Positions 14,444 to 64,000 of a DNA stretch of 64,000 bases are shown here, piece by piece (the first letter of the stretch is position 1; every line of letters starts with the position of its first letter). Position numbers and translations under genes: made by a program. The DNA is from Scyliorhinus canicula (lineage: Eukaryota). The DNA lies in assembly GCF_902713615.1 (NCBI RefSeq), contig NC_052147.1, positions 30,802,276 through 30,866,275 of the forward strand. Direction: 5' to 3'. The notes beneath the pieces were generated by a model, which was not told where the DNA came from, did not search any database, and saw only the letters and a list, made by a program, of their open reading frames with translations.

Positions 14444-15626
14444 ATTGTATTTAAGTATTTTTTTGCAGTAAGGGTTAAAAGCCTGGGTTAGAGTGTGTTT
14501 GACTACTAAAATAATGTTTTAAATGATTCTTAGGTTGAACAAAGCTTTTGGGAGCCAGAGGTGCAACTAACCATTGTAAAAAGCTTCAGCTAATGCAGTT
14601 TTTTTTGATTGTGGGGATTCCTTGGGGAGTGAATTAGTTTTCAGCTTTGTGAGATGATTAGAAGTCATAGAATCCCTACAGTGCAGATGAAGGCCTTTCA
14701 GCCCATCAGGTCTGCATAGACCCTCTGAAAGAGCACCCACCTAGGCCCAACCGCCTGTAACCCCACCAAACCTGCACATCCCTGGACACGAGCGGCAATT
14801 TAGCATGGCCAATCCGTCTAACCTGCACACCTTTAGACTATGGAAGGAAACCGGAGCAGCCAGAGGAAACCCATGCAGACACAGGGAAAATCTGAAAAAT
14901 CTGCAGACATTCAACCAAGGCCAGATTTACATAGAACATAGAACAGTACAGCACAGAACAGGCCCTTCGGCCCTCAATGTTGTGCCGAGCCACGATCACC
15001 CTACTCAAACCCACGTATCCACCCTATACCCATAACCCAACAACCCCCCATTAACCTTACTTTTATTAGGACACTACGGGCAATTTAGCATGGCCAATCC
15101 ACCTAACCCGCACATCTTTTGGCTGTGGGAGGAAACCGGAGCACCCGGAGGAAACCCACGCACACAGGGGGAGGACGTGCAGACGCCACACAGACAGTGA
15201 CCCAGCCGGGAATCGAACCTGGGACCCTGGAGCTGTGAAGCATTTATGCTAACCACCATGCTGCCGTTCCACCTGTCAGTGCTGGGTGGAGCTAATGCAT
15301 CCGGCTTTTTGAGAAAGCATTTTCAGTTCAGTTCTGCTCTGGCTGGGAATACAAGTCAGGTTTTATGGAGCAGTGTATCACTATCGCAAACAAAAGCACG
15401 AAATTGTATTTCCATATCTTTGTGTAATATGACTAACATAACATTTTGAGCAACCTATTTCTGATTTTGGAATTCAGGACCTCTTTGGAATACTTTCCCA
15501 CTTTGTTTCCAGCCACAAGCAATCTGTCCCAGCTCAATATTAAACACAAGTTCTACAAAATAGCTGCATTACTGAGTTGTTCTATTTTCCACACGTACGG
15601 TTTTTGAGATTGCAAGTTTAACCTTT

Positions 15627-18066: not shown

Positions 18067-18397
18067 CAGGGGTGGGCAAACTACGGCCCGCGGGCCGCAT
18101 GCGGCCCGCCAAAGGTATTTCTGCGGTTTTTAATTTTTTTTTTAAAAGGTTAATGGGGGGGGGCGCTGTTGGGTTACTTACTGGTATAGGGTGGATACGT
18201 TGACTTGAGTAGGGTGATCATTGCTCGGTACAACGTCGCGGGCCGAAGGGCCTGTTCTGTGCTGTTCTATGTTCTATATGAGGCGCCCAGAATCATAACC
18301 GGGTGAAGTAATTATTTTACTTAATATACTATGCGGCCCTTTGTGAATTGTGAATTTCTGAATGTGGCCCTTGCACGGAAAAGTTTGCCCACCCCTG
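18067..18397 (+). mobile_element. hAT (Charlie-like) MITE carrying a SINE tail
   Basis: Perfect 16-bp TIRs CAGGGGTGGGCAAACT and perfect 8-bp TSD TTCTAGAG (18059-18066, 18398-18405). Confidence 0.95.
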
Positions 18398-38200: not shown

Positions 38201-38619
38201 TTTTTGTTAACTGATCTGCTGACATAGCATTACTGCGTTTAAACATTAGCAGTTGTATTTACATTTTGACTCCTGGGTGGTGATACCAATGATTTTGTAA
38301 CTCTAATGAAAGGAGGCTGTTTAGCCCATCCATCCAGTGAAAGTGAGGTTTTTGGCTCCACTATCTTAGCCAAAAGATCATTTTGGATATTAACATAAAT
38401 AAATGTGTCCCAGTTCTTATCCTGAATCACCCTTTCACGAGTACGAGCCTGTGCATGTTTGTTCTAGTGATTTGCCTCATCTAAAACAGCTTACCTTGTG
38501 TATATTGTTTCCTGTCTTGTATGTTTGTATAAGGTGCCCTCCCTAAAGAGCTCCACTTTTTCAATCTCAGCTCTTAACTCAATCCTTTGACTCCTAGGAT
38601 CAGCCTCATGGTTTTTCAT

Positions 38620-41565
38620 TGGTGCAGGCGGGAGGGATTCAGATTTCTGGATAACTGGGGCTCTTTCTGGGGAAGGTGGGACCTCTATAGACAGGATGGT
38701 CTACATCTGAACCTGAGGGGCACCAATATCCTGGGGGGGGAGATTTGTTAGTGCTCTTTGGGGGGGTTTAAACTAATTCAGCAGGGGCATGGGAACCTGG
38801 ATTGTAGTTTTGGGGTACGGGAGATTGAGAGTATAGAGGTCAGGAGCACAGATTTGACTTCGCAGGAGGGTGCCAGTGTTCGGGTAGGTGGTTTGAAGTG
38901 TGTCTACTTCAATGCCAGGAGTATACGAAATAAGGTAGGGGAACTGGCAGCATGGGTTGGTACCTGGGACTTCGATGTTGTGGCCATTTCAGAGACATGG
39001 ATAGAGCAGGGACAGGAATGGTCGTTGCAGGTTCCGGGGTTTAGGTGTTTTAGTAAGCTCAGAGAAGGGGGCAAAAGAGGGGGAGGTGTGGCGCTGCTAG
39101 TCAAGGACAGTATTACGGTGGCGGAAAGGATGCTAGATGGAGACTCTTCTTCCGAGGTAGTATGGGCTGAGGTTAGAAATAGGAAAGGAGAGGTCACCCT
39201 GTTGGGAGTTTTCTATAGGCCACCTAATAGTTCTAGGGATGTAGAGGAAAGGATGGCGAAGATGATTCTGGAAAAGAGCGAAAGTAACGGTAGTTGTTAT
39301 GGGAGACTTTAACTTTCCAAATATTGACTGGAAAAGATATAGTTCGAATACATTAGATGGGTTGTTCTTTGTATAATGTGTGCAGGGGGGTTTCCTGACA
39401 CAATATGTTGACAGGCCAACAAGAGGCGAGGCCACATTGGATTTGGTTTTGGGTAATGAACCAGGCCAGGTGTTAGATCTGGAGGTAGGTGAGCACTTTG
39501 GAAACAGTGACCACAATTCGGTGACCTTTACGTTAGTGATGGAAAGGGAAAAGTATACCCCGCAGGGCAAGAGTTATAGCTGGGGGAAGGGCAATTATGA
39601 TGCCATTAGACATGACTTAGGATGTGTAGGTTGGAGAAGTAGGCTGCAAGGGTTGGGCACACTGGATATGTGGAGCTTGTTCAAGGAACAGCTATTGCGT
39701 GTTCTTGATAAGTACGTACCAGTCAGGCAGGGAAGAAGGGGTCGAGCGAGGGAACCGTGGTTTACCAAAGAAGTGGAATCTCTTGTTAAGAGGAAGAAGG
39801 AGGCCTATGTGAAGATGAGGCGTGAAGTTTCAGTTGGGGCGCTTGATAGTTACAAGGAAGCGAGGAAGAATCTAAAGAGAGAGCTCAGACGAGCAAGGAG
39901 GGGACATGAGAAGTCTTTGGCAGGTAGGATCAAGGAAAACCCAAAAGCTTTCTATAGGTATGTCAGGAATAAAAGAATGACTAGGGTAAGAGTAGGGCCA
40001 GTCAAGGACAGTGGTGGGAAGTTGTGTGTGGAGGCTGAGGAGATAAGCGAGATACTAAATGAATACTTTTCGTCAGTATTCACTCAGGAAAAAGATAATG
40101 TTGTGGAGGAGAATGCTGAGACCCAGGCTATTAGAATAGATGGCATTGAGGTGCGTAGGGAAGAAGTGTTGGCAATTCTGGACAAGGTGAAAATAGATAA
40201 GTCCCCGGGGCCTGATGGGATTTATCCTAGGATTCTCTGGGAAGCCAGGGAAGAGATTGCTGAGCCTTTGGCTTTGATTTATATGTCATCATTGGCTACA
40301 GGAATAGTGCCAGAGGATTGGAGGGTAGCAAATGTGGTCCCTTTGTTCAAGAAGGGGAGTAGAGATAACCCCGGTAACTATAGGCCGGTGAGCCTCACGT
40401 CTGTTGTGGGTAAAGTCTTGGAGAGGATTATAAAAGATACGATTTATAATCATCTAGATAGGAATAATATGATTAGGGATAGTCAGCATGGTTTTGTGAA
40501 GGGTAGGTCATGCCTCACAAACCTTATCGAGTTCTTTGAGAAGGTGACTGAACAGGTAGACGAGGGTAGAGCAGTTGATGTGGTGTATATGGATTTCAGT
40601 AAAGCGTTTGATAAGGTTCCCTACAGTCGGCTATTGCAGAAAATACGGAGGCTGGGGATTGAGGGTGATTTAGAGATGTGGATCAGAAATTGGCTAGTTG
40701 AAAGAAGACAGAGGGTGGTAGTTGATGGCAAATGTTCAGAATGGAGTTCAGTTACGAGTGGCGTACCACAAGGATCTGTTCTGGGGCCGTTGCTGTTTGT
40801 CATTTTTATAAATGACCTAGAGGAGGGCACAGAAGGTTGGGTGAGTAAATTTGCAGACGACAATAAAGTCGGTGGAGTTGTAGACAGTGTGGAAGGATGT
40901 TGCATGTTACAGAGGGACATAGATAAGCTGCAGAGCTGGGCTGAGAGGTGGCAAATGGAGTTTAATGTGGAGAAGTGTGAGGTGATTCACTTTGGAAAGA
41001 AAAACAGGAATGCGGAATATTTGGCTAATGGTAAAATTCTTGGCAGTGTGGATGAGCAGAGGGATCTCGGTGTCCATGTACATAGATCCCTGAAAGTTGC
41101 CACCCAGGTTGATAGGGTTGTGAAGAAGGCCTATGGTGTGTTGGCCTTTATTGGTAGAGGGATTGAGTTCCGGAGCCATGAGGTCATGTTGCAGCTGTAC
41201 AAAACTCTGGTACGGCCGCATTTGGAGTATTGCGTACAGTTCTGGTCGCCTCATTATAGGAAGGACGTGGAAGCTTTGGAACGGGTGCAGAGGAGATTTA
41301 CCAGGATGTTGCCTGGTATGGAGGGAAAATCTTATGAGGAAAGGCTGATGGACTTGAGGTTGTTTTCGTTAGAGAGAACAAGGTTAAGAGGTGACTTAAT
41401 AGAGGCATACAAAATGATCAGAGGGTTAGATAGGGTGGACAGTGATAAGCATATGGATGATAATGGCATAGTGTAGGTTAGATGGCCTTTAGTTTTTGAC
41501 TTCCCATGTTGGTGCAACATCGTGGGCCGAAGGACCTGTACTGCGCTGTATCGTTCTATGTTCTA
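38620..41565 (+). mobile_element. Young 5'-truncated CR1 (HER1-like) LINE: ORF1 end, ORF2, 3' tail
   Basis: ORF1 SGNH-like end (RREGFRFLDNW..LYRQDGLHLN), APE endonuclease (YFNARSIRNK, AISETW, GDFN, SDHN), RT (DFSKAFDKV, GVPQGSVLGP, FADD at 40850-40861) and tail ending GTTCTATGTTCTA. Confidence 0.96.
38767..41476 (+). pseudogene. CR1 ORF2 (endonuclease-reverse transcriptase), disabled
   Basis: ORFs 38758-39312 and 39380-41476 are joined by one frameshift (about 39288) and one in-frame TAA (39374-39376). There is also an apparent C-terminal deletion near 41443. Confidence 0.9.
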
Positions 41566-41919
41566 TTGCATCCCCTCCAATGTCTTTTTGAATGTCTTAA
41601 TTGAAGTTGAAAACTGCACTCTGATGCAGCCTGACCTGGATGCTGTGTGTAGTACATACTGAATATCTCATTGCATTTCTACTTCACCTTTATTGCCACA
41701 ACATCTCAAGTATATGCATAAACTTATCTTTAGCTTCAGTGTGTGTACTAACTTGGAGTTATCTGCATCGAATTTCATCTTTTGCTGTTTTGCCCTTTTC
41801 AGATCGCATTCCTCTGTAGATGTCTAGTTACTCTTTGCTCATACTGCAGCTGCTTCCACCGCTGTAGTTATAATCTGAAAATGTGACTACTTTACATTGG
41901 GTTACTGATTTCTTTCTCT

Positions 41920-46600: not shown

Positions 46601-49105
46601 CTGTTTTTCAAACTTTTTTCCCGTACCCATTTTTACCAACCAGCCAACATTCGGGACCTACACCGGCCGACCTTCGTGTTCATTTACTTTTAATGCGAAA
46701 GGGGAGCCTGCTTGGTCCTCATGATTTCACTTCAATCAGGCGCAAAGGAAGAGAGGACAATGCACATATCGGGTGCTGCCTCAGCCAGTTCCTCTGTGCC
46801 ATCGTCATCTTTGTGAAAATGAAAATCCAATATAAGTCATCATGAAGGACAAAACTATACCTCAAAATCATCTTTTTATTGCTTTGTTCCTGAGTTAAGC
46901 TTCTTCTTTATAATCAGAGGCCCTGGAGCTGTGTGCCGAGCAAACACTAGCACTGCTCTGTTCTGCCCTGGACTCTCCTAAGCAGCTCGCTCCAGCAGAT
47001 TCTGTTGTGAGATCCTGTCCAATTTGAGTCTCTGGCCATCTCTTGCTTTTCAGTAAACCATTCATCTTCACAGTTCACTTGTCTTGCTTGCCAGCAGCTG
47101 GAAAATGGAAGCAACTCTGCTTTGTGATTTGGTGTCAAAAGCATATACCTGGAGAGCGCTTAATGTCAAGTGTGTGTGCAGGGCACGTGGCCTCTCTGCT
47201 GTCGCTTCTTTCTGGAAAATATCACCTAGCCTAATTTATTTTAATTTAAAATGTGTCAACGGATGCCATTCTCTCTTTTTTGTTTTTGTTTGCAATAGAG
47301 ATGTTATTTTGGAAAGGTAGGCATCAGGGATCCCAACATAACCAAGAGTAAAGAGCATTGGGCACGATTCTCTGTAACCATGATGGGTGGGAGAATAGCG
47401 GGAAGTCCCTCCCGCTATTCTCCCCCCCAAATGGCGTGTCCGATTTTGCGACACGCCGCTTGGAGAAACGTGGGCCGCCGTTTTTCACGTCATTAGGCGC
47501 TGCCGCAGCGTCATTCTTGGCGCGCCGGGCCTTGAAGCCAGGTACAAGGCCTGGCAACCGAGTTTCCCGGTACAGCCCTCCTATCCCCCCGGGGAGGGGA
47601 GAATAGGGGGCCGGGAGAGGCTTCCGACGCCGTCGTGAACCTCTCGGATTTCACGACGGCGTCGGGCCTTGTGGCGAATTCCGCCCATTGTTTCAGCTGA
47701 TATTACAATCTAGCTTTAAAAATCCATTGTTTTTCCAGAATGCAATTTCGTTATAATTCACGTCAAAATGCAAAAATAGCAAATTTCTTCAAGCCATGAC
47801 ACAGAAGTTTAATACTAGAGAAGATACAACACTGAAATCTGCATTCTCCAACCATTATGCTCTCCTGCATGAATACCAAAATAAACAATACACTTTTCAG
47901 AATTCATGTCATTTTGCACCAAAGTCTGGTTTATATCATAAGACGGGAGTCCTTCTCGGTAGAGACAGGGGTTTATTTTCAAAATGTGAACTCCGATACT
48001 AAAATAAAATGTAAAAAAACCGTGGCCATAACCGTTGGGGCAGTACGGTAGCATGGTGGTTAGCATAAATGCTTCACAGCTACAGGGTCCCAGGTTCGAT
48101 TCCCGGCTGGGTCACTGTCTGTGCGGAGTCTGCACGTCCTCCCCGTGTGTGCGTGGGTTTCCTCCGGGTGCTCCGGTTTCCTCCCACCGCCCAAAGATGT
48201 GCGGGTTAGGTGGATTGGCCATGCTAAATTGCCCATAGTGTCCTAAAAAAAAGGTAAGGTGGGGGGGTTGTTGGGTTATGGGTATAGGGTGGATACGTGG
48301 GATTGAGTAGGGTGATCATTGCTCGGCACAACATCGAGGGCCGAAGGGCCTGTTCTGTGCTGTACTGTTCTATGTTCTATAACTCCTGAGAGCTACATTG
48401 ACTCAATTCCGAGTCTGGCATTCAATGCGACCCAGGGTGTTACCAAATATGGTGCCCCCCCCCCCCCCCCCCCAAAGAAATCTGGTGCCCAGTAATCCCT
48501 CACAACTAAACCACATACTAGAGACTGGATCTCACCCCAAGTGTTTGGCGGAGGGGGGGCTGCTGTTCAGTCACCAGGGCCTGTGTCAGCAGATGAAGTC
48601 TCGGGCCAGCACAAGCCTAATTTTCCTGGATAAAGCACTGATTGGAGTCGCGCCGGGGTCAGCGGCATACTGAGCCTTGGGCACAGGCACACCAGGAAGT
48701 GGATCAAAATACTCTCTCTTCCTCCCGACCGTGGGGATGGAGAGGCCTCGCCTCTCCCTGAATCACCGGGTTTCACTCGCCCTAAGTGCCCAGCACGAAA
48801 CCTTCCCGGACACTAGCCGACACTCCGTCTCCACACAAACCGGGGTGAACCCTGAGCTGTGGACATTTAAGCTGTAAATTTTTTTTTTTTACAGTACCTA
48901 ATTCATTTTTTCCAATTAAGGAGCAATTTTTAGTGTGGCCAATCCACCTATCCTGCACATCTTTGGGTTGTTGGGGCAAAACCCACACAAACGTGGGGAG
49001 AATGTGCACTGATCTCAAAGTTAAAGACAGGCGCTCCCATGATCGGTACCACCGCAGGACCTGTGACCTACCCATGGGTCGGGACCCCAACTTTGAAAAC
49101 CCCTG
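46601..49105 (-). mobile_element. Non-autonomous hAT (Charlie/Buster-like) element with nested insertions, inserted in a CR1
   Basis: Imperfect TIRs (CTGTTTTTCAAACT / ACTTTGAAAACCCCTG) and degenerate 8-bp TSD CTCAAAGA / CTCTAAGG. The flanks read as contiguous CR1. There is a transposase N-terminus-like remnant from ATG 47065 to about 46845. Confidence 0.6.
47359..47686. mobile_element. Harbinger/Tourist-like MITE with internal hairpins
   Basis: Imperfect TIRs GGGCACGATTCTC / GCGAATTCCGCCC, ATT on both flanks, and hairpins GGGAGAATAGCGGGA...TCCCGCTATTCTCCC and CCGACGCCGTCGTGAA...TTCACGACGGCGTCGG. Confidence 0.7.
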
Positions 49106-50560
49106 CTCTAAGGGCCTATGTTCACTTTGGCCTCTTCTTTTTTTCTATATTTAAAGAAACTCTTGTCCGTTTTTATATTACTTGCTAAGTTTATCTTCTC
49201 CCTCATTGTTTGGTCATCTTTTGTTTTTTTAAAACCGTCTCAATCCGCTGGTTTACCACTAATCTTTATCACTTTTATTTTTCCTATGTTTACCATTATC
49301 CTTCACTTCCTTGGTTAACCATGGTTGATTTATCCCGTTCCCAGAATCCTCCTTCCTCACTGGCATATATTCTTGTTGAGAGTCATGAACTATTTCCAGA
49401 AACATCTGCCAGTCAATCACCTTTTTTGCCAAACTCCTTTCCCACTCTACTCCAGCTAACTCTGCCCTCATTCCTTTACAATTTCCCGAAGTGTAGCGCA
49501 GTTGTTTCTGACTCAAGTTTCTATTCCTCTAACTATACTGCAACTAGATTTTGCTTTTCTCCCCCCACTAGAATGGCTCCTTGTACCACGGTGCTGTGGC
49601 CAGTTTGCTTATCCTCCCTACAGTCCCTGCTCTTGTCCACACAGGACCAAAAATCTCGAACCTGTTGGGTAGGGGCCAAGGCTCCTGCAGTGCTACCTCT
49701 TGGATCCCTCTACCTGCCTCACTTGTAGTCTCTCAATCCTGTCCATGACCACTGAACAAATTCAAGGTAGTTCATCTAAGGCAGGGGTGGGCAAACTTTT
49801 CCGTGCAAGGGCCACATTCAGAAATTCACAATTTTAAAGGGCCGCATAGTATATTAATTAATAGTCCCGGTTGTAACCAATTAGCGTGCGGCATATACCT
49901 CAGCGCTTCCCCCGGCGGCATCCTGCCTTTAGCCCTCTTTTTCTCTACTTTTCAAAAATGGCGCTTCACCCGGTTATGATTCTGGGCGCCTCATATAGAA
50001 CATAGAACAGTACAGCACAGAACAGGCCCTTCGGCCCTCGATGTTGTGCCGAGCAATGATCACCCTACTCAAGTCAACGTATCCACCCTATACCAGTAAC
50101 CCAACAGCCCCCCTCCCCATTAACCTTATTTTTTTTTTATGACTTGATCTTGGTGGGCCGCATAAAGACCTTTGGCGGGCCGCAGTTTGCCCACCCCTGA
50201 TCTAAGGGGTGTGACTGCCTCCTGTAACACAGCATCCAAGTAACTCTGCCCTTCCCTAATGTGTCACAATGTCTGAAGCTCAGACTCCAGCTCATTAAAT
50301 CTGAGCCAAGGTTCCTTGAGCAACCAACATTTGCTATAGGTGTGGTCACTATGACGCAATGGGGTGCACCATCTCCCTCGTGCTACAGCTACAACACCTG
50401 GCCTGGTCCTCCATCCCTATTTCATTTAATAACATTTTCAATTTGTTTTGAATTTGAATGCTGATTTTAGTTTTCACACCAACCTTTTCAGCCTTGCCTT
50501 CAATTTCAAAGTAAGTCTGATAAGGCGGAAGAGAGAAATACCTGCCGACACAATGTTTAC
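49106..50560 (-). mobile_element. Degenerate CR1 5' fragments (continuing 46470-46600)
   Basis: GNCKGMRAELAGVEW...WQMFLEI...QPWLTKEVKD and ORF1-like LMSWSL...VTWMLCYRR remnants. Confidence 0.7.
49782..50199 (-). mobile_element. hAT (Charlie-like) MITE carrying a SINE tail, second copy
   Basis: Same TIRs as 18067-18397 and perfect 8-bp TSD ATCTAAGG (49774-49781, 50200-50207). Confidence 0.95.
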
Positions 50561-52235
50561 CTGTGATATTACATGGGTGTGTTCACTCAATGTTGTAGGA
50601 CTGCTGTAACTTTTCTCCCAGCTCTCTCGCCGTGGTCTGCTGCAGTCCCCACTGACCTGTGGATGTAGCAAGAGAAAGCAGACACAGCAAAACCTCCCTA
50701 AACTCCCATGCTTTGCTCAATTCCAGAGTCTCACTGCAGCTAGTACCCCGTAGAGACTGCACGTTTGAGACCTGTTTTTATATTCTCAGCCTCCTGTTTC
50801 CAGGAACCCTATTTTAGCCAGTTACTAACTGCCCTGGCTTGCCCCCCCACCCCCCCACCCCCCCCCGCCCCCTCCCCAAAACTAGGAAACTTTGTTTTTA
50901 CTTTGCTTAGGTCTGAAAAGATGCTTAAATGTCTACCCTTCAATTACCAGCAATTTGTGTTAGATTTTAAGAAGGTTATCCCTGACAAAGCTGGCGTTTA
51001 TTGGTCACCTTAAGTTGCCCAGGTTTGATATTTACTGGGTTACTTCCACGGTTAGGGTGACATTAGTGAACCAGTTGAGTTTTTATGATGCTCTGACCAA
51101 TCCATTGGCGTTTTACTAATACCAACTAAATACAAATTCTCTCAAGTTTGTAGCTATTTGAGCTTGAATTCTTTAGTTTACTAATCCAGTAGTTTCGCAT
51201 TGTACCCTTGCTGCAGTCCATCCTGTCAATGATGCACACGGCAGCCAGAGTGCTGCATTGGTGGAGGGCGTGAATGGTTAGGCTAATGCATGAGGTGCTA
51301 ATCTAGTGAATGCTTAGTTTATGGATGCGAGTTGTTTGATATTTGTGTGCAAAAGGATGCTTTACTTTATAGACACATGAGGAATGGAGCTTTTATTTGC
51401 TGGGAGGAAGGACGGGTGCAAGATCCTGTACAACTCTGAGTAATTAATCGTACAATATGTTGTTAGAAACTGCAGAACTGCATTTTTAAAAAAAGTTTGT
51501 AAAAGTTTTGAGCAGTTTGGTAATTGATGTACTCTAGCCGTTGGAAATTTTCAAACAAAAAGATAGCGTGGGATATAACACACTATGTGGCCAGTCAGAT
51601 TTGTTCTTCCCCTTTTTAGAGTATCTAGCTTTTTGCCCTCCGTCCATTGATCTTTAATTTTATTTGTAATAATCTTTCCATTGCTTTTGCCCACCCACCC
51701 ACATATTATTTTGGATTGAGGAAAAGATTTTTTGACTTTGTAATTCCTATTACAGGTTGTCTTAGAGTGGTGTCTGTGCTCGGGTCACGTTATACTGTAG
51801 TCCAGTTCCAGGCACCAAGCAGGGAAGTGTAGAGAAACCAATCGGATGATACATTTGCAGTTACGTATTTTATATCGCCATCATGTGGCTGAAATTGGGA
51901 ATAATCATATAGCACCGGCCCCGAGTCTGTTCTGACATTAAAATCTTGGCTGATTTGCAATTTAACTCCCTCCCTAATAGCACTGTGGGTGTACCTACAC
52001 GTCAAGGACTGCAGCGGTTCAAGAAGGCAACTAGGGATGGGCAATAAATGCTGACCTAACCAGTGACGCCCATCTCCTGTAAATGAATTTAAAAAAATAC
52101 GCCCACTTTGTCTGACATCCCTATATAGAACATAGAACAGTACAGCACAGAACAGGCCCTTCGGCCCTCGATGTTGTGCCGAGCAATGATCACCCTACTC
52201 AATCCCACATATCCACCCTATACCCATAACCCAAC

Positions 52236-61041: not shown

Positions 61042-64000
61042 ATCCCCACTCTCTGCCTTCTGCCAGTCAGCCAATCCTCTATCCATGCCAGGATCTTACC
61101 CGTAACACCATGGGCTTTTAACTTATTTAACAGTCTCCTATGCGGCACCTTGTCAAAGGCCTTCTGGAAATCTAAATAAATCACGTCCACTGGTTCTCCT
61201 TTGTCTAACTTTCTTGTTACCACCTCAAAGAACTCTAACAGATTTGTCAGACACGACCTCCCTTTGACAAAGCCGTGCTGACTCAGTCCTATTTTACCAT
61301 GCACTTCTAAATATCCTTAAATACAGATTCTAAAATCTTACCAATGACCAAAGTCAGGCTAACCGGCCTATAATTTCCCATCTTCTGCCTCCCTCCCTTA
61401 AACAAGATGTGGAGATTAACCTGAGGAAGGACCTGCGCTCCGAAAGCTCGTGTTTGAAACAAACCTGTTGGACTTTAACCTGGTGTTGTAAGACTTCTTA
61501 CTGTTCTTAAACAAGGGTGTTACATTAGCCACTTTCCAGTCTTCTGAGACCCTTCCTGCCTCCAGTGATTCCTCAAAGATCGTCACTTATGCCTCCACAA
61601 TTTCCTCAGCCATCTCTTTTAGAACCCTGGGATGTAGTCCATCCGGTCCAGGTGACTTATCCACCTTCAGATCTTTCAGTTTCCCCAGAACCTTCTCCTT
61701 CGTAATGGTCACTGCACTTAACTCTGCCCCCTGGTTCTCCTGGAGCTCTGGCATCCCACTGGTGTCTTCCAACGTGAAGACTGATGCAAAGTAACTATTC
61801 AGTTTGTCTGCCATTTCTTTGATTCCTATTATTACTTCTCCAGCCACATTTTCCAGTGGTCCAATGCCTATTTTTGTCTCTACCTTTTATGTATTGATAT
61901 ATTGAAAAAAATTCTTCCTATCTTTCCTTTATATTACTAGCTAGCTTGCACTCATACTTCATCTTCTCCCCCGTATTGCTTTATTAGTTGTCCTCTGCTC
62001 ACTTTTAAAGACTTCCCAATCCTCCAGTTTATCACTAATCCTCGCCATTATGCATGCTTTTTCTTTAGCTTTTATGCTGTCCTTGACATCCCTCATCAGC
62101 CATGGATGTCTTGTCCTCTCCTTAGCACGTTTCCTCCTCGTGATGAATTTCTGTTGTGCCACCCTAATAACCCCCAAAAACACCTGCCATTGCTGTTTCG
62201 CTGTCTTCCCTGCTAGGCTCCTTTACCAATCGACTCTGGCCAGCTCCTCCCTCGTGTCTTTGTAGTTACCCTCATTTAATTGTAATACCGTTTAGTGGGC
62301 AGCACGGTAGTACAAGTGATTAGCACTGTAGCTTCACAGCGCCAGGGTCCCAGGTTCGATTCCCTGCTGTCCCGTGCGGAGTCTGCACATTCTCCCAGTG
62401 TCTGTGGATTTCCTCCGGGTGCTCCAGTTTCCTCCCACAGTCCAAAGATGTGCAGATTAGGTGGATTGACCATGATAAATTGCCCTCAGTGAGCAAAAAA
62501 AGGTTAGTAGGGGTTAGTGGGTTACCGGGATAGGGTGGGTGAGGGTTTAAGTGGGTCGGTGCAGACTCGATGGCCGAATGGCCTCCTTCTGCACTGTATG
62601 TTCTATGAACTTCTGATTGCAGCTTCTCCCTCTCAAACTGCAGGGTAAATTCTATCATATTGTGGTCACTGCTCTGCAAGGGTTCTTTCACCTTAAGTTC
62701 CCTAATCAAGTCTGCCTCATTACACATCACCAAATCCAGAATTGTCTGTTCCCTAGTCGGCTCTGTCACAAGCTACTCGAAAAACAGTCTCTTAGACATT
62801 CCACAAATTCCTTTTCTTGGGATCCACTACCAACCTGATTTTCCCAGTCCACCTGCATATTGAAGTCTCCCATGATTATTGTAATGTTGCCTTTTTTACA
62901 TGCCGTTTCTATTTCTTGATTTATTTTCTGCCCCACAGCCTGACTACTGCTAGGGGCCTGTATATAATTTCCATCAGGGTCTTTTACCTATGCGATTCCT
63001 CAACTCTACCCACAGAGATTCTATGCCTTCTGATCCTATATCGTTCCTTGCTATCGATTTAACTTCATTCCTTACTAACAATGCAACCTCATTTTCTCAT
63101 CTGTCTGTCCTTTCGATAGGACATATATCCGTGGATATTTAGATCCCTGCCCTGATCCACTTGCAGCCATATCTCTGTGATGCCCACAACATCATACCGG
63201 CCAATTTCCATGTGCGCAACAAACTCATTTACCTTTTTCCCTATACTGCGCACATTTAGATACAATACCCTCAATCCTGCATTGGCCACCTACCTTTTTG
63301 CACTCTCCTCAGTCATTGTACCCTGTACTGTGGCCCTTTTTGATTTTTGACTATGGCTTCTCTGCCTTATACTTTCCCCCTTTTTTGTTTCTGGACCAGT
63401 TTTGCTTCCCTCCGACTTCCTGCATCGGTTTCGATCCCCCTGCCACATTAGTTTAAACCCTCCCCAACAGCACTAGCAAACGCCCCAGTCCTGCCCAGCT
63501 GCAGACCGTCTGGTTTGTACTGGTCCCACCACCCCCAGAACCGCTTACAATGCCCCAGAAATTTGAATCCCTCCCTCTTGCACCATCTCTCGAGCCACGC
63601 ATTCATCCTATCTATCCTGACATTCCTACTCTGACTAGCTTGTGGCACTGATATCAATCCTGAGATTACTACCTTTTGAGGTCCTACTTTTTAGATTAAC
63701 TCTTTACTCCCTGAATTCAGCTTGTAGGACCTCATCCGGTTTTTTTGCCTATATTGTTGGTGCCTACGTGCACCACGACAGCTGGCTGTTCACCCCCCCC
63801 CCCCCCCCCCCCCCCAACCACCCCCCCGTCAAAGAATGTCCTGCAACCGCTCCGAGACACCCTTGACCTTTTTCAGGAAGGCAACATACCATCCTGGAGT
63901 CTCGATTGCGTCCACAGAACAGCCTGTCTATTCCCCTTACGATCGAGTCCCCTATCACTATATCCCTGCCATTCTTCTTCCTGCCCTCCTGCGCAGCTGA
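61042..64000 (-). mobile_element. CR1 LINE (ORF1 SGNH-esterase-like, endonuclease, RT start), degenerate
   Basis: IGDSIVRGIDRLFCG, WCKREGFKFLGH..DQYKPDGLQL, LYLNVRSIGKK, SDHNMIEF, KSPGPDGLHPRVLKE and QHGFVKGRSCLTNLLEFF. Confidence 0.93.
61407..61505 (+). mobile_element. 99-bp Penelope-like insert with hammerhead core and 10-bp TSD
   Basis: TSD CTTAAACAAG at 61397-61406 and 61506-61515. Motif CTGAGGA-A-GGA-CCTGCGC-TCC-GAAA-GC-T-C at 61421-61449. Confidence 0.8.

Follow-up and report, generated by a model that had tools for sequence, protein, structure and literature searches.

How is the second reading frame of a LINE translated when it opens in the -1 frame at the very end of the first and lacks an ATG there? 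Translation of LINE second ORFs is an acknowledged open question; to our knowledge, no LINEs other than L1 and SART1 have been studied in this respect, and neither of these frameshifts. The question is raised here by a CR1 element in the 64-kb stretch of Scyliorhinus canicula DNA that was analysed (the window). Its ORF1/ORF2 junction probably preserves, in a copy that is now dead, a signal for programmed -1 frameshifting through which esterase-type CR1 LINEs express ORF2, with the slippage itself inferred and not supported by any experimental data. The features referred to below are these (positions in the window):

38620..41567, + strand: esterase-type CR1 LINE, 5'-truncated and inactivated, with the last ~50 ORF1 codons, ORF2 and a 3' tail
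38620..38776, + strand: ORF1 remnant, C-terminus of an SGNH/GDSL esterase ending ..WGGLN and stop, homologous to ORF1 of the relative L002 (tail alignment)
38733..38740, + strand: G8 run with one private extra G that throws upstream ORF1 out of phase; the closest contigs (X16, X9, X6) leave out one base at 38733
38767..38773, + strand: slippery heptamer TTTAAAC (U_UUA_AAC), in X_XXY_YYZ phase with ORF1 (sequence reading; invariant in 14 diverged lineages)
38774..38776, + strand: ORF1 stop TAA, directly 3' of the heptamer (sequence reading)
38784..38787, + strand: G-run conserved across lineages, starting 10 nt past the heptamer; candidate 3' stimulator
38767..39312, + strand: 5' part of ORF2 in the -1 frame, a linker and then AP-endonuclease (ORF listing; Pfam PF03372)
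39288..39289, + strand: private 2-nt deletion breaking ORF2; AG is inserted behind 39288 in all contigs of X9, X16 and X6
39380..41476, + strand: remaining ORF2 with reverse transcriptase (Pfam RVT_1, PF00078, E = 5.8e-35)
63446..63462, - strand: junction of a second, diverged CR1 copy, GGT TTA AAC TAA TG, with the same heptamer and stop; an ATG overlaps the stop

In birds, reptiles, many fishes and sharks, the principal retrotransposons belong to the CR1 group; assignment of the window element to that group, with an esterase-type ORF1, is based on domains and homologues (no reverse transcriptase tree with reference elements stands behind it). The two ORF2 pieces match the AP-endonuclease (PF03372) and reverse transcriptase (PF00078) families of Pfam, and ORF2 has its homologues among the CR1 ORF2 proteins of sharks, rays, turtles, birds and frogs. 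Of ORF1, no more than the C-terminal ~50 residues (WCRREGF...DGLHLN...) are left, too short for a Pfam match; the collinear ORF1 of L002 matches Lipase_GDSL_2 (9.5e-14), as do the ORF1 products of L004, L096, L097, L098 and L100. A tree of the endonuclease (EN) domain groups the window copy with a turtle element, L005, and with an unlabelled, bird-like metagenome locus, L054.

The window copy is a dead relic, as its 5' truncation, private extra G and private 2-nt deletion show. It breaks off near 38620 (contig depth begins at 38596-38627 and the letters upstream differ in other copies) and its 3' end reads ...GTTCTATGTTCTAT; the ORF2 frame stops at 39312 and restarts at 39380 in the ORF listing. 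The upstream esterase C-terminus (38587..38751, ...DGLHLNLRGTNILGG) differs in phase by one base from WGGLN and its stop, and the earlier note had argued that one G in 38733-38740 must be ignored. That claim holds: ignoring it is justified because the closest family contigs have one G fewer in this run (depth 9.77/9.77 in X16 and 17.6/28.3 in X9), and the corrected ORF1 tail, RFVSALWGGLN, matches up in alignment with the KFATALQGGLN of L002, an intact relative. The family contigs, whose depth peaks at 38762-38793, are informative for the two private lesions; variants close to contig ends go unlisted, so that the absence of any listed heptamer variant is only weak evidence.

At the junction, the zero frame reads GGT TTA AAC TAA (the heptamer-spanning codons occupy 38765-38773) and gives ..WGGLN and stop. 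The -1 frame, TTT AAA CTA ATT CAG..., belongs to an open frame (38758..39312) that contains the endonuclease, with its first ATG at 39130. The earlier note had claimed as much for the phase of the heptamer, the position of the TAA, and the opening of the -1 frame into the endonuclease ahead of any ATG; all of this held, on direct reading and with the ORF listing and PF03372. TTTAAAC is, however, not a rare string (22 occurrences in the window against 14.2 expected), and the significance of this one therefore rests on its phase, position and conservation, not on its occurrence.

When 14 representative U_UUA_AAC lineages are aligned, anchored on the heptamer, all 7 of its positions carry 2.0 bits, in contrast to 0.49 bits in the flanks, which are near random (pairwise identity upstream only 36%); TAA or TAG follows immediately in 14/14. 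The first base of the heptamer is the third base of the preceding codon and is always T, while that codon itself varies (GGT, GCT, TCT, TTT, TAT, AAT, TGT). The same constraint is visible in proteins: in 46 ORF1 proteins ending x-L-N, from taxa that include rays, sharks, coelacanth, teleost, Xenopus and turtles, x (position -3) is any of 11 amino acids. Codons for K, Q, E, M and W cannot end in T; these five residues account for 1/46 at x, as against 28/46 and 21/46 at positions -4 and -5. The heptamer, its phase and its strict conservation at the level of nucleotides, beyond what the protein requires, are shown, and the check for synonymous variation within it comes out in favour of frameshifting.

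The heptamer and stop might nevertheless be conserved as a 10-mer for reasons other than recoding, as a required x-L-N C-terminus of ORF1p or as an RNA or DNA signal, with ORF2 reached by internal entry or non-AUG initiation. The L-N end lies exactly 26 residues past the DGxH motif of ORF1p in many taxa, which could reflect a protein constraint, but no such constraint can fix Leu as TTA, Asn as AAC and a variable preceding codon as NNT. Nor does this explanation account for the U_UUU_UUA and A_AAA_AAC alternatives described below, which are also in phase. Internal initiation, moreover, has no need of an ORF2 frame that is open all the way back to the heptamer, yet between heptamer and EN motif (1069 codons at 19 loci) that frame has 0 stops, as compared with 82 and 148 in the other two. 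It is a very improbable reading.

Relatives were collected through their EN domains, blind to the junction, and those counted have an esterase-type ORF1 of at least 100 amino acids and ORF2 in the -1 frame (n=18). An in-phase canonical heptamer is present within the short ORF1/ORF2 overlap (10-139 nt) in 18/18, as U_UUA_AAC in 11, U_UUU_UUA in 5 and A_AAA_AAC in 2; out of phase, these overlap regions contain just 2 heptamers. These are not independent events, because the lineages share ancestry. In the EN tree U_UUA_AAC is paraphyletic, with the other heptamers nested within it. Sister lineages with homologous ORF1 tails have U_UUU_UUA, in phase and displaced by one codon. In an L2-like clade, A_AAA_AAC sits 30-33 nt ahead of the stop, where the -1 frame is already open; in most lineages 0-3 nt separate heptamer and stop. 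These alternative canonical heptamers, too, are shown. The window's own heptamer, U_UUA_AAC, recurs letter for letter in CR1 copies from sharks, turtles, a teleost and a bird, and from metagenomic eukaryotes that are unidentified; the named organisms with the signal are Natator depressus, Mycteria americana and Paramormyrops kingsleyae. The earlier note proposed testing whether ORF2 is always in the -1 frame, and that is so in 18/19 of the sampled esterase-type elements, the exception, L079, being a decayed copy; this also favours frameshifting. Elements whose ORF1 is not an esterase have long -1 overlaps with an in-phase canonical heptamer in only 8/23, and the claim is confined to esterase-type elements for that reason.

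The closest ORF2 relative, L001 (83%), was excluded: no ORF1 precedes it, and at 38833-38835, where the window reads ATA, it reads ATG. Such a locus could be a variant without ORF1 or a metagenome contig of chimeric origin. L099, from a stork, has the heptamer and stop, but a stop in the -1 frame 132 nt downstream; we take it to be an old decayed copy and regard it as neutral.

The -1 shift might be made not by the ribosome but by RNA polymerase slipping on homopolymer runs, yielding -1 transcripts. U_UUU_UUA and A_AAA_AAC do include six identical bases in a row. Six-base runs are short for polymerase slippage, though, and in TTTAAAC, the commonest site, the longest runs are T3 and A3. Contigs labelled as RNA (the label is a guess) are, in addition, colinear with DNA over the heptamer; record 17 of X6 has 1 difference and 1 gap, the latter being the G-run. 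Polymerase slippage is the least probable reading of all.

A more serious rival is termination-reinitiation: ORF1 is finished at its stop and some ribosomes restart there in the -1 frame, making ORF2p as a separate protein. There are precedents for two variants. SART1 couples stop and start through an overlapping UAAUG (Kojima et al. 2005, as described in PMC3894237 and PMC3708506); for ORF2 of human L1 an unconventional, AUG-independent termination-reinitiation has been proposed (Alisch et al. 2006, as cited in PMC3708506 and PMC5009743). Several observations would suit such a process: the closeness of stop to heptamer in most lineages; the TAATG of the second window copy and the ATGA of L098; a hairpin in the U_UUU_UUA group that starts 6 nt past the stop, a geometry like that reported for SART1 (PMC3894237); and the reported dispensability of ORF1p in ZfL2-1. 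An ORF2 frame that is open from the stop onward fits equally well.

Against it stands the absence of any conserved start or near-cognate codon at the junction: the codons following CUA are AUU, AUG, AGU, GGU, AAU, GGG, GAU and GUA. An AUG overlapping the ORF1 stop is found only in window copy 2 (whose junction shares 68% identity with that of copy 1) and in L098; the window copy and L002 have TAATT instead. No ATG at all lies between heptamer and EN motif in 8/19 elements, including the intact L002 and L097. The openness of the -1 frame and the frequent lack of an AUG are shown, and the check for an in-frame AUG at the junction favours frameshifting. Termination-reinitiation also leaves unexplained why seven bases upstream of the stop should be invariant, a synonymous third position among them, why they should be exchanged for other canonical heptamers, and why A_AAA_AAC should be kept 30-33 nt before a stop with the -1 frame already open. 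It is unlikely, but it is not excluded.

The evidence on a downstream stimulator is mixed. The absence of a strong pseudoknot, claimed previously, is borne out, no stable 3' structure being found at the window junction (MFE z = 0.17). Single-sequence folding finds no significant structure in the 75-90 nt downstream in vertebrate-type lineages (z from -1.2 to +0.8), ViennaRNA predicts no G-quadruplex in those lineages, the window copy included (none is claimed because four G-tracts in ~60 nt are not universal), and no Rfam family was found at the window junction and six related loci. What is shown is a run of 4-7 G that begins 8-10 nt past the heptamer in all vertebrate-type lineages as well as in L040, L079, L095, L096 and L100; the codon preceding it always ends in G while the amino acid varies. 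The proposal in the earlier note that downstream G-runs stimulate frameshifting is met to this extent, that the run is conserved at the nucleotide level; stimulation itself is only inferred. Conserved hairpins with compensatory changes are found in other lineages. Hairpins are placed 4-10 nt downstream of the heptamer in L021, L024, L069, L073 and L074 (covariation was examined only in L021, L069 and L024). The hairpin of the U_UUU_UUA group starts 12 nt past the heptamer, beyond the usual spacing of 5-9 nt.

Programmed -1 frameshifting, the preferred reading, would work as follows. In an active element, ribosomes would translate the ORF1 esterase up to U_UUA_AAC at its last two codons, where a minority would slip one base back (UUA to UUU, AAC to AAA). 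These ribosomes would bypass the adjacent stop and, now in the -1 frame, go on to translate a brief linker (F-K-L-...), the endonuclease and the reverse transcriptase. ORF1 and ORF2 would be joined in one fusion protein, made in a low and constant proportion to ORF1p, like Gag-Pol to Gag. The earlier note had inferred just such a fusion, an inference that is supported but not proven. Whether slippage occurs, how efficient it is, and whether G-run and adjacent stop stimulate it are all matters of inference. A trans-frame product has no experimental support. The want of a predicted stable 3' structure or G-quadruplex in vertebrate-type lineages, the spacing of the U_UUU_UUA hairpin and the resemblance of TAATG and ATGA to translational coupling also count against frameshifting. 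Differences in the linker between heptamer and EN motif do not look clearly coding (101, 102 and 130 at codon positions 1, 2 and 3 in six pairs, an excess short of significance in an alignment that had itself been guided by the ORF2 frame). For the zebrafish L2 element ZfL2-1, only a slight dependence on ORF1p is reported (Kajikawa 2012, as cited in PMC3880073 and PMC4176376); this speaks against a fusion being obligatory, for L2 at least.

A close likeness is to the Gag-Pol-type -1 frameshifting of retroviruses, LTR-retrotransposons and coronaviruses. There, too, canonical heptamers identical to these stand in X_XXY_YYZ phase where an upstream structural or accessory ORF ends, the polymerase follows in the -1 frame, and a fusion at low fixed ratio is to be expected. 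(U_UUA_AAC is the site of IBV and SARS-CoV, U_UUU_UUA that of HIV-1, and A_AAA_AAC that of astroviruses and HTLV.) CR1, in contrast, is a non-LTR LINE whose upstream protein is an SGNH esterase and not a Gag, its stop abuts the heptamer, and its vertebrate representatives have only a G-run 8-10 nt downstream in place of a pseudoknot or strong hairpin. A zero-frame stop directly after the heptamer is also found in luteoviruses and dianthoviruses, which are plant RNA viruses (G_GGU_UUU UAG in BYDV, G_GAU_UUU UAG in RCNMV); their sites differ in relying on adjacent or long-distance RNA structures. For a stimulator without structure there is the -2/-1 frameshift of PRRSV nsp2, with a protein-bound, linear, C-rich motif ~11 nt downstream (a class mentioned in PMC5009743). 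The CR1 motif is likewise short, unstructured, homopolymer-like and 8-11 nt downstream, but it is G-rich and has no known binding factor, and any role for it is purely inferred.

The two LINEs already mentioned offer partial parallels. SART1 shares the -1 frame of ORF2 overlapping the ORF1 stop, with some of the lineages here a downstream RNA structure and, with window copy 2, the UAAUG; it differs in making separate proteins, whereas CR1 conserves not an AUG but a slippery heptamer ahead of the stop. Human L1 likewise translates ORF2 from a bicistronic LINE RNA without need of an AUG, but its ORFs are separated by a spacer that contains in-frame stops, and it lacks a slippery heptamer, while the CR1 ORFs overlap and the ORF2 frame is open to the heptamer. 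Whether frameshifting had already been reported for CR1 was left open previously; no report was found in the full-text literature searched, which did not take in Haas 1997 or Kajikawa 1997.

Esterase-type CR1/L2 LINEs predominate among the retrotransposons of most non-mammalian vertebrates; they are also seen among unidentified eukaryotic elements from metagenomes. A bolder reading, for and against which the case is evenly poised, makes -1 frameshifting the ancestral and general mode of ORF2 expression in these elements, as an esterase-EN-RT fusion, with a signal made of a stop-abutting heptamer and a linear G-run, possibly with a trans-acting factor, and not of a pseudoknot. If frameshifting is real, ORF2p would from the outset be joined to the esterase ORF1p, and its stoichiometry and cis-preference would therefore be explained in a Gag-Pol-like way. 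Annotation of CR1 ORF2 would change, because many ORF2 models begin at an arbitrary internal ATG or GTG. A large and ancient family of sites, with an atypical stimulator, would be added to the known cellular instances of -1 frameshifting.

In copy 1, the 5'-truncated CR1 LINE of the window, and in copy 2, a diverged CR1 copy on the minus strand, the ORF1/ORF2 junction and its surroundings read as follows.

38767-38773, plus strand: slippery heptamer TTTAAAC (direct sequence reading)
38774-38776, plus strand: ORF1 stop TAA (direct sequence reading)
38758..39312, plus strand: open -1 frame, TTT AAA CTA ATT CAG ... (ORF listing)
38784-38787, plus strand: conserved G-run
39380-41476, plus strand: reverse transcriptase (RT) part of ORF2 (Pfam RVT_1)
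~41567, plus strand: 3' end of copy 1, ...GTTCTATGTTCTAT
63462-63446, minus strand: copy 2 junction, GGT TTA AAC TAA TG (direct sequence reading)

Copy 1 ORF1 ends ..WGGLN, encoded GGT TTA AAC TAA, and the heptamer is therefore in X_XXY_YYZ phase. The -1 frame carries the AP-endonuclease domain PF03372 (Pfam), and its first ATG, at 39130, lies deep within the enzyme. Both readings, of the phased heptamer with its stop and of the open frame, had been made in the earlier note, and both held. So did its claim of one extra G in the run at 38733-38740. Relative to WGGLN and its stop, the ORF1 remnant 38587..38751 (...WCRREGFRFLDNWGSFWGRWDLYRQDGLHLNLRGTNILGG) is shifted by one base; the extra G is accepted because it is missing from the nearest family contigs (read sets X16, 9.77/9.77; X9, 17.6/28.3; X6, 374/862) and because correction yields the tail RFVSALWGGLN, which can be aligned with KFATALQGGLN in an intact relative. 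Two bases present in all close relatives are missing after 39288, so that ORF2 is broken between 39312 and 39380. The 5' end reaches only ~38620, upstream of which other copies run on with different letters. Copy 1 is thus dead three ways: truncated start, extra G and two-base loss. Its family abounds in the source organism, and the depth of aligned contigs is highest at 38762-38793, marking the junction as the stretch common to most subfamilies. The tail at 41515-41566 recurs at 80-88% identity in five other window places (48329-48380, 49995-50046, 52125-52176, 14931-14982 and 18227-18277), which might reflect SINEs or MITEs sharing a CR1 tail.

Copy 2 is only 68% identical to copy 1 over the junction, and its ORF1 end (...GAFASAVGEGLN, then stop) keeps phase across it. 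An ATG overlaps its ORF1 stop (TAATG), as it also does in SART1; this raises termination-reinitiation, in which ORF2 would be reached by restarting at the ORF1 stop, as the main rival to programmed -1 frameshifting. The ORF1 esterase region of copy 2 also holds a run of ~25 G with one interruption (63764-63830, minus strand) that resembles an expanded G-tract; with the extra G of copy 1 in mind, G-runs of this family seem prone to length change.

Fourteen representative U_UUA_AAC lineages were aligned by anchoring on the heptamer. All 7/7 of its positions are invariant (2.0 bits), the stop being TA[AG]; the 48-nt flanks on either side score 0.49 and 0.48 bits, and mean pairwise identity upstream is 36%. 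The heptamer opens with a T that fills the third position of a varying codon (GGT, GCT, TCT, TTT, TAT, AAT or TGT): the base is fixed while the encoded amino acid changes freely. A protein survey agrees, in named taxa. Forty-six ORF1 proteins, with named sources among rays, sharks, a sawfish, Latimeria, Paramormyrops, Xenopus and turtles, end x-L-N, most of them exactly 26 residues past a DGxH motif. Codons for K, Q, E, M and W cannot end in T; x takes eleven identities and is one of these five residues in only 1/46, while they occupy positions -4 and -5 in 28/46 and 21/46. A purely protein-level constraint on x-L-N fits the data poorly and is very improbable, and the same holds for transcriptional slippage, in which the frame would change in the transcript itself.

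The heptamer has also been exchanged. ORF1 tails of U_UUU_UUA lineages are homologous to the others (...KHCVSFLG and stop vs ...KHCVKYLN and stop); TTA (Leu) and the stop have not moved, and the slippery run sits one codon further upstream. On the endonuclease tree U_UUA_AAC is paraphyletic and therefore probably ancestral; A_AAA_AAC forms one clade, and U_UUU_UUA lies nested within U_UUA_AAC in at least two places. Repeated in-phase replacement by another canonical slippery sequence would not be expected of a motif with some other function.

By means of an alignment of 14 endonuclease domains, 89 loci were retrieved from contigs of metagenomes and genomes, blind to the junction, and ORF2 frame, upstream ORF and its stop were located in each. 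Of these loci, 19 have an esterase-type ORF1 with a length of 100 aa or more, and in 18 of the 19 ORF2 overlaps it in the -1 frame, the exception (L079) being a decayed copy. The earlier note had proposed examining junction conservation across relatives; the frame is kept in these 18, and the seven bases within the U_UUA_AAC lineages. Every one of the 18 has an in-phase canonical heptamer within its 10-139 nt overlap: U_UUA_AAC in 11 (stop 0 nt downstream in ten, 24 nt in one), U_UUU_UUA in five (one more codon, then stop) and A_AAA_AAC in two (L097 and L098; stop 30-33 nt downstream). Two heptamers in these overlaps are out of phase. Elements with a non-esterase ORF1 have longer overlaps (73-241 nt) and an in-phase canonical heptamer in only 8/23; the signature is therefore peculiar to the esterase type, to which the claim is restricted.

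Several observations lie to the side of this survey. The A_AAA_AAC pair, an L2-like esterase-ORF1 clade, has its heptamer (L097:2100-2106, L098:1148-1154) in phase inside a conserved GGTCAAAAAACG; L098 has an ATGA stop/start overlap and L097 no ATG whatever before the endonuclease. In a non-esterase CR1-like group (L014, L018, L022, L035, L046, L065, L084 and others) ORF1 ends ...ENYxFxVVGxG..KVIKIKK and ORF2 overlaps it by 73-112 nt in the -1 frame, most members lacking a canonical heptamer. Two diverged non-esterase loci, L028 and L082, share a conserved in-phase G_GGA_AAC, the heptamer type of PEG10, 66 nt before the ORF1 stop, with similar downstream sequences.

Full-length ORF2 homologues were traced back to their contigs for junction reading.

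Junctions of individual relatives
L002 (ENA metagenome assembly): ORF2 936 aa, intact, 75% identical to window; ORF1 end GGT TTA AAC TAA TTT; -1 frame open, without ATG before endonuclease
L004 (Logan assembly): ORF1 335 aa with GDSL, ORF2 958 aa; ORF1 end TCT TTA AAC TAA; -1 frame open, first ATG 107 nt past the stop's first base
L005 (turtle Natator depressus): ORF2 939 aa; ORF1 end GCT TTA AAC TAG; -1 frame open, first ATG 77 nt past the stop's first base
L095 (ENA metagenome assembly): ORF1 end TTT TTA AAC TAA; -1 frame open
L096 (Logan assembly): ORF1 end TAT TTA AAC TAG; -1 frame open
L100 (teleost Paramormyrops kingsleyae): ORF1 end TGT TTA AAC TAG, then G7 run; -1 frame open into endonuclease, without ATG
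L099 (stork Mycteria americana): ORF1 end GCT TTA AAC TAG; old copy, -1-frame stop 132 nt downstream

The gene caller assigned L002 ORF2 a GTG start. Between heptamer and first endonuclease motif (1069 codons, 19 loci) stops number 0 in the ORF2 frame and 82 and 148 in the other two; there is no ATG in 8/19, and in the rest the first ATG is scattered over codons 12 to 83. In several elements a -1-frame stop lies only 0-12 nt upstream of the heptamer, which places ORF2 entry at or just after it. We infer from these comparisons that ORF2 is likely read from the heptamer and not from an internal start.

The closest ORF2 relative, L001 (intact, 942 aa, 83% identical), lacks an ORF1 upstream (L001:1-200) and has an ATG where the window reads ATA (38833-38835); either its subfamily is without ORF1 and has a start codon of its own, or the metagenome contig is chimeric. 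In the shark lineage GGG precedes the heptamer (window 38765-38773; L002:451-460), so that G_GGU_UUA and U_UUA_AAC overlap in phase as a 10-nt double slippery run. CR1 fragments (L003, L086, L087, L088, L089; proteins P0068, P0145) also turn up in assemblies labelled Carnobacterium maltaromaticum, Aeromonas cavernicola, Bathyarchaeota MAG, Chitinophagaceae MAG, Klebsiella pneumoniae and Pseudomonas aeruginosa, almost certainly as eukaryotic contamination that now stands in protein databases under bacterial names.

No significant RNA structure was found downstream of the copy 1 heptamer (z = 0.17), as the earlier note had judged. All vertebrate-type lineages, and also L040, L079, L095, L096 and L100, have a run of 4-7 G whose start lies 8-10 nt past the heptamer. 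The -1-frame codon preceding it always ends in G, yet encodes Q, P, K, R or G, and the run therefore looks constrained as RNA. By analogy with the C-rich motif of PRRSV, a linear stimulator, it may serve to bind a factor, which is no more than an inference. Hairpins are present in other lineages: 4-6 nt downstream of the heptamer in L021, L024 and L069 (8 pairs, one compensatory), and also in L074 and L073. The U_UUU_UUA group has a 9-pair hairpin (GCACUCC/GGAGUGC; two compensatory pairs) that begins 12 nt past the heptamer, atypically far, and only 6 nt past the stop.

That spacing speaks for termination-reinitiation, as do the stop abutting the heptamer, TAATG in copy 2, ATGA in L098, and the little dependence on ORF1p reported for the zebrafish L2 element ZfL2-1 (cited in PMC3880073, PMC4176376). 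Reinitiation remains possible but is unlikely: it leaves unexplained the invariant heptamer with its fixed synonymous third position, the switching of heptamers, and the A_AAA_AAC clade, in which the heptamer precedes the stop by ~30 nt.

For programmed frameshifting there are familiar models. The CR1 heptamers are shared with the Gag-Pol sites of retroviruses and LTR elements, and the CR1 signal would work alike. Luteoviruses and dianthoviruses have shift sites abutted by a stop, an arrangement that the CR1 junction recalls. A 2016 review of frameshifting names only HeT-A, TART and L1 among non-LTR elements (PMC5009743), in reviews of LINE translation the ORF2 mechanism counts as unclear and frameshifting goes unmentioned (PMC3894237, PMC3708506), and the junction is not taken up in recent surveys of CR1 (PMC13343379, PMC4120745). 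No earlier report of a CR1 frameshift was found in the literature searched, which left out Kojima 2005, Kapitonov & Jurka 2003, Haas 1997 and Kajikawa 1997.

Comparative evidence reaching far outside the window supports the frameshift interpretation, the mechanism itself being unproven. On comparative sequence evidence, without reporter or proteomic data, esterase-type CR1 elements probably carry a programmed -1 frameshift signal for ORF2. Frameshifting and its stimulation being inferred, this would be a known kind of mechanism, in a new class of host and with an atypical stimulator.
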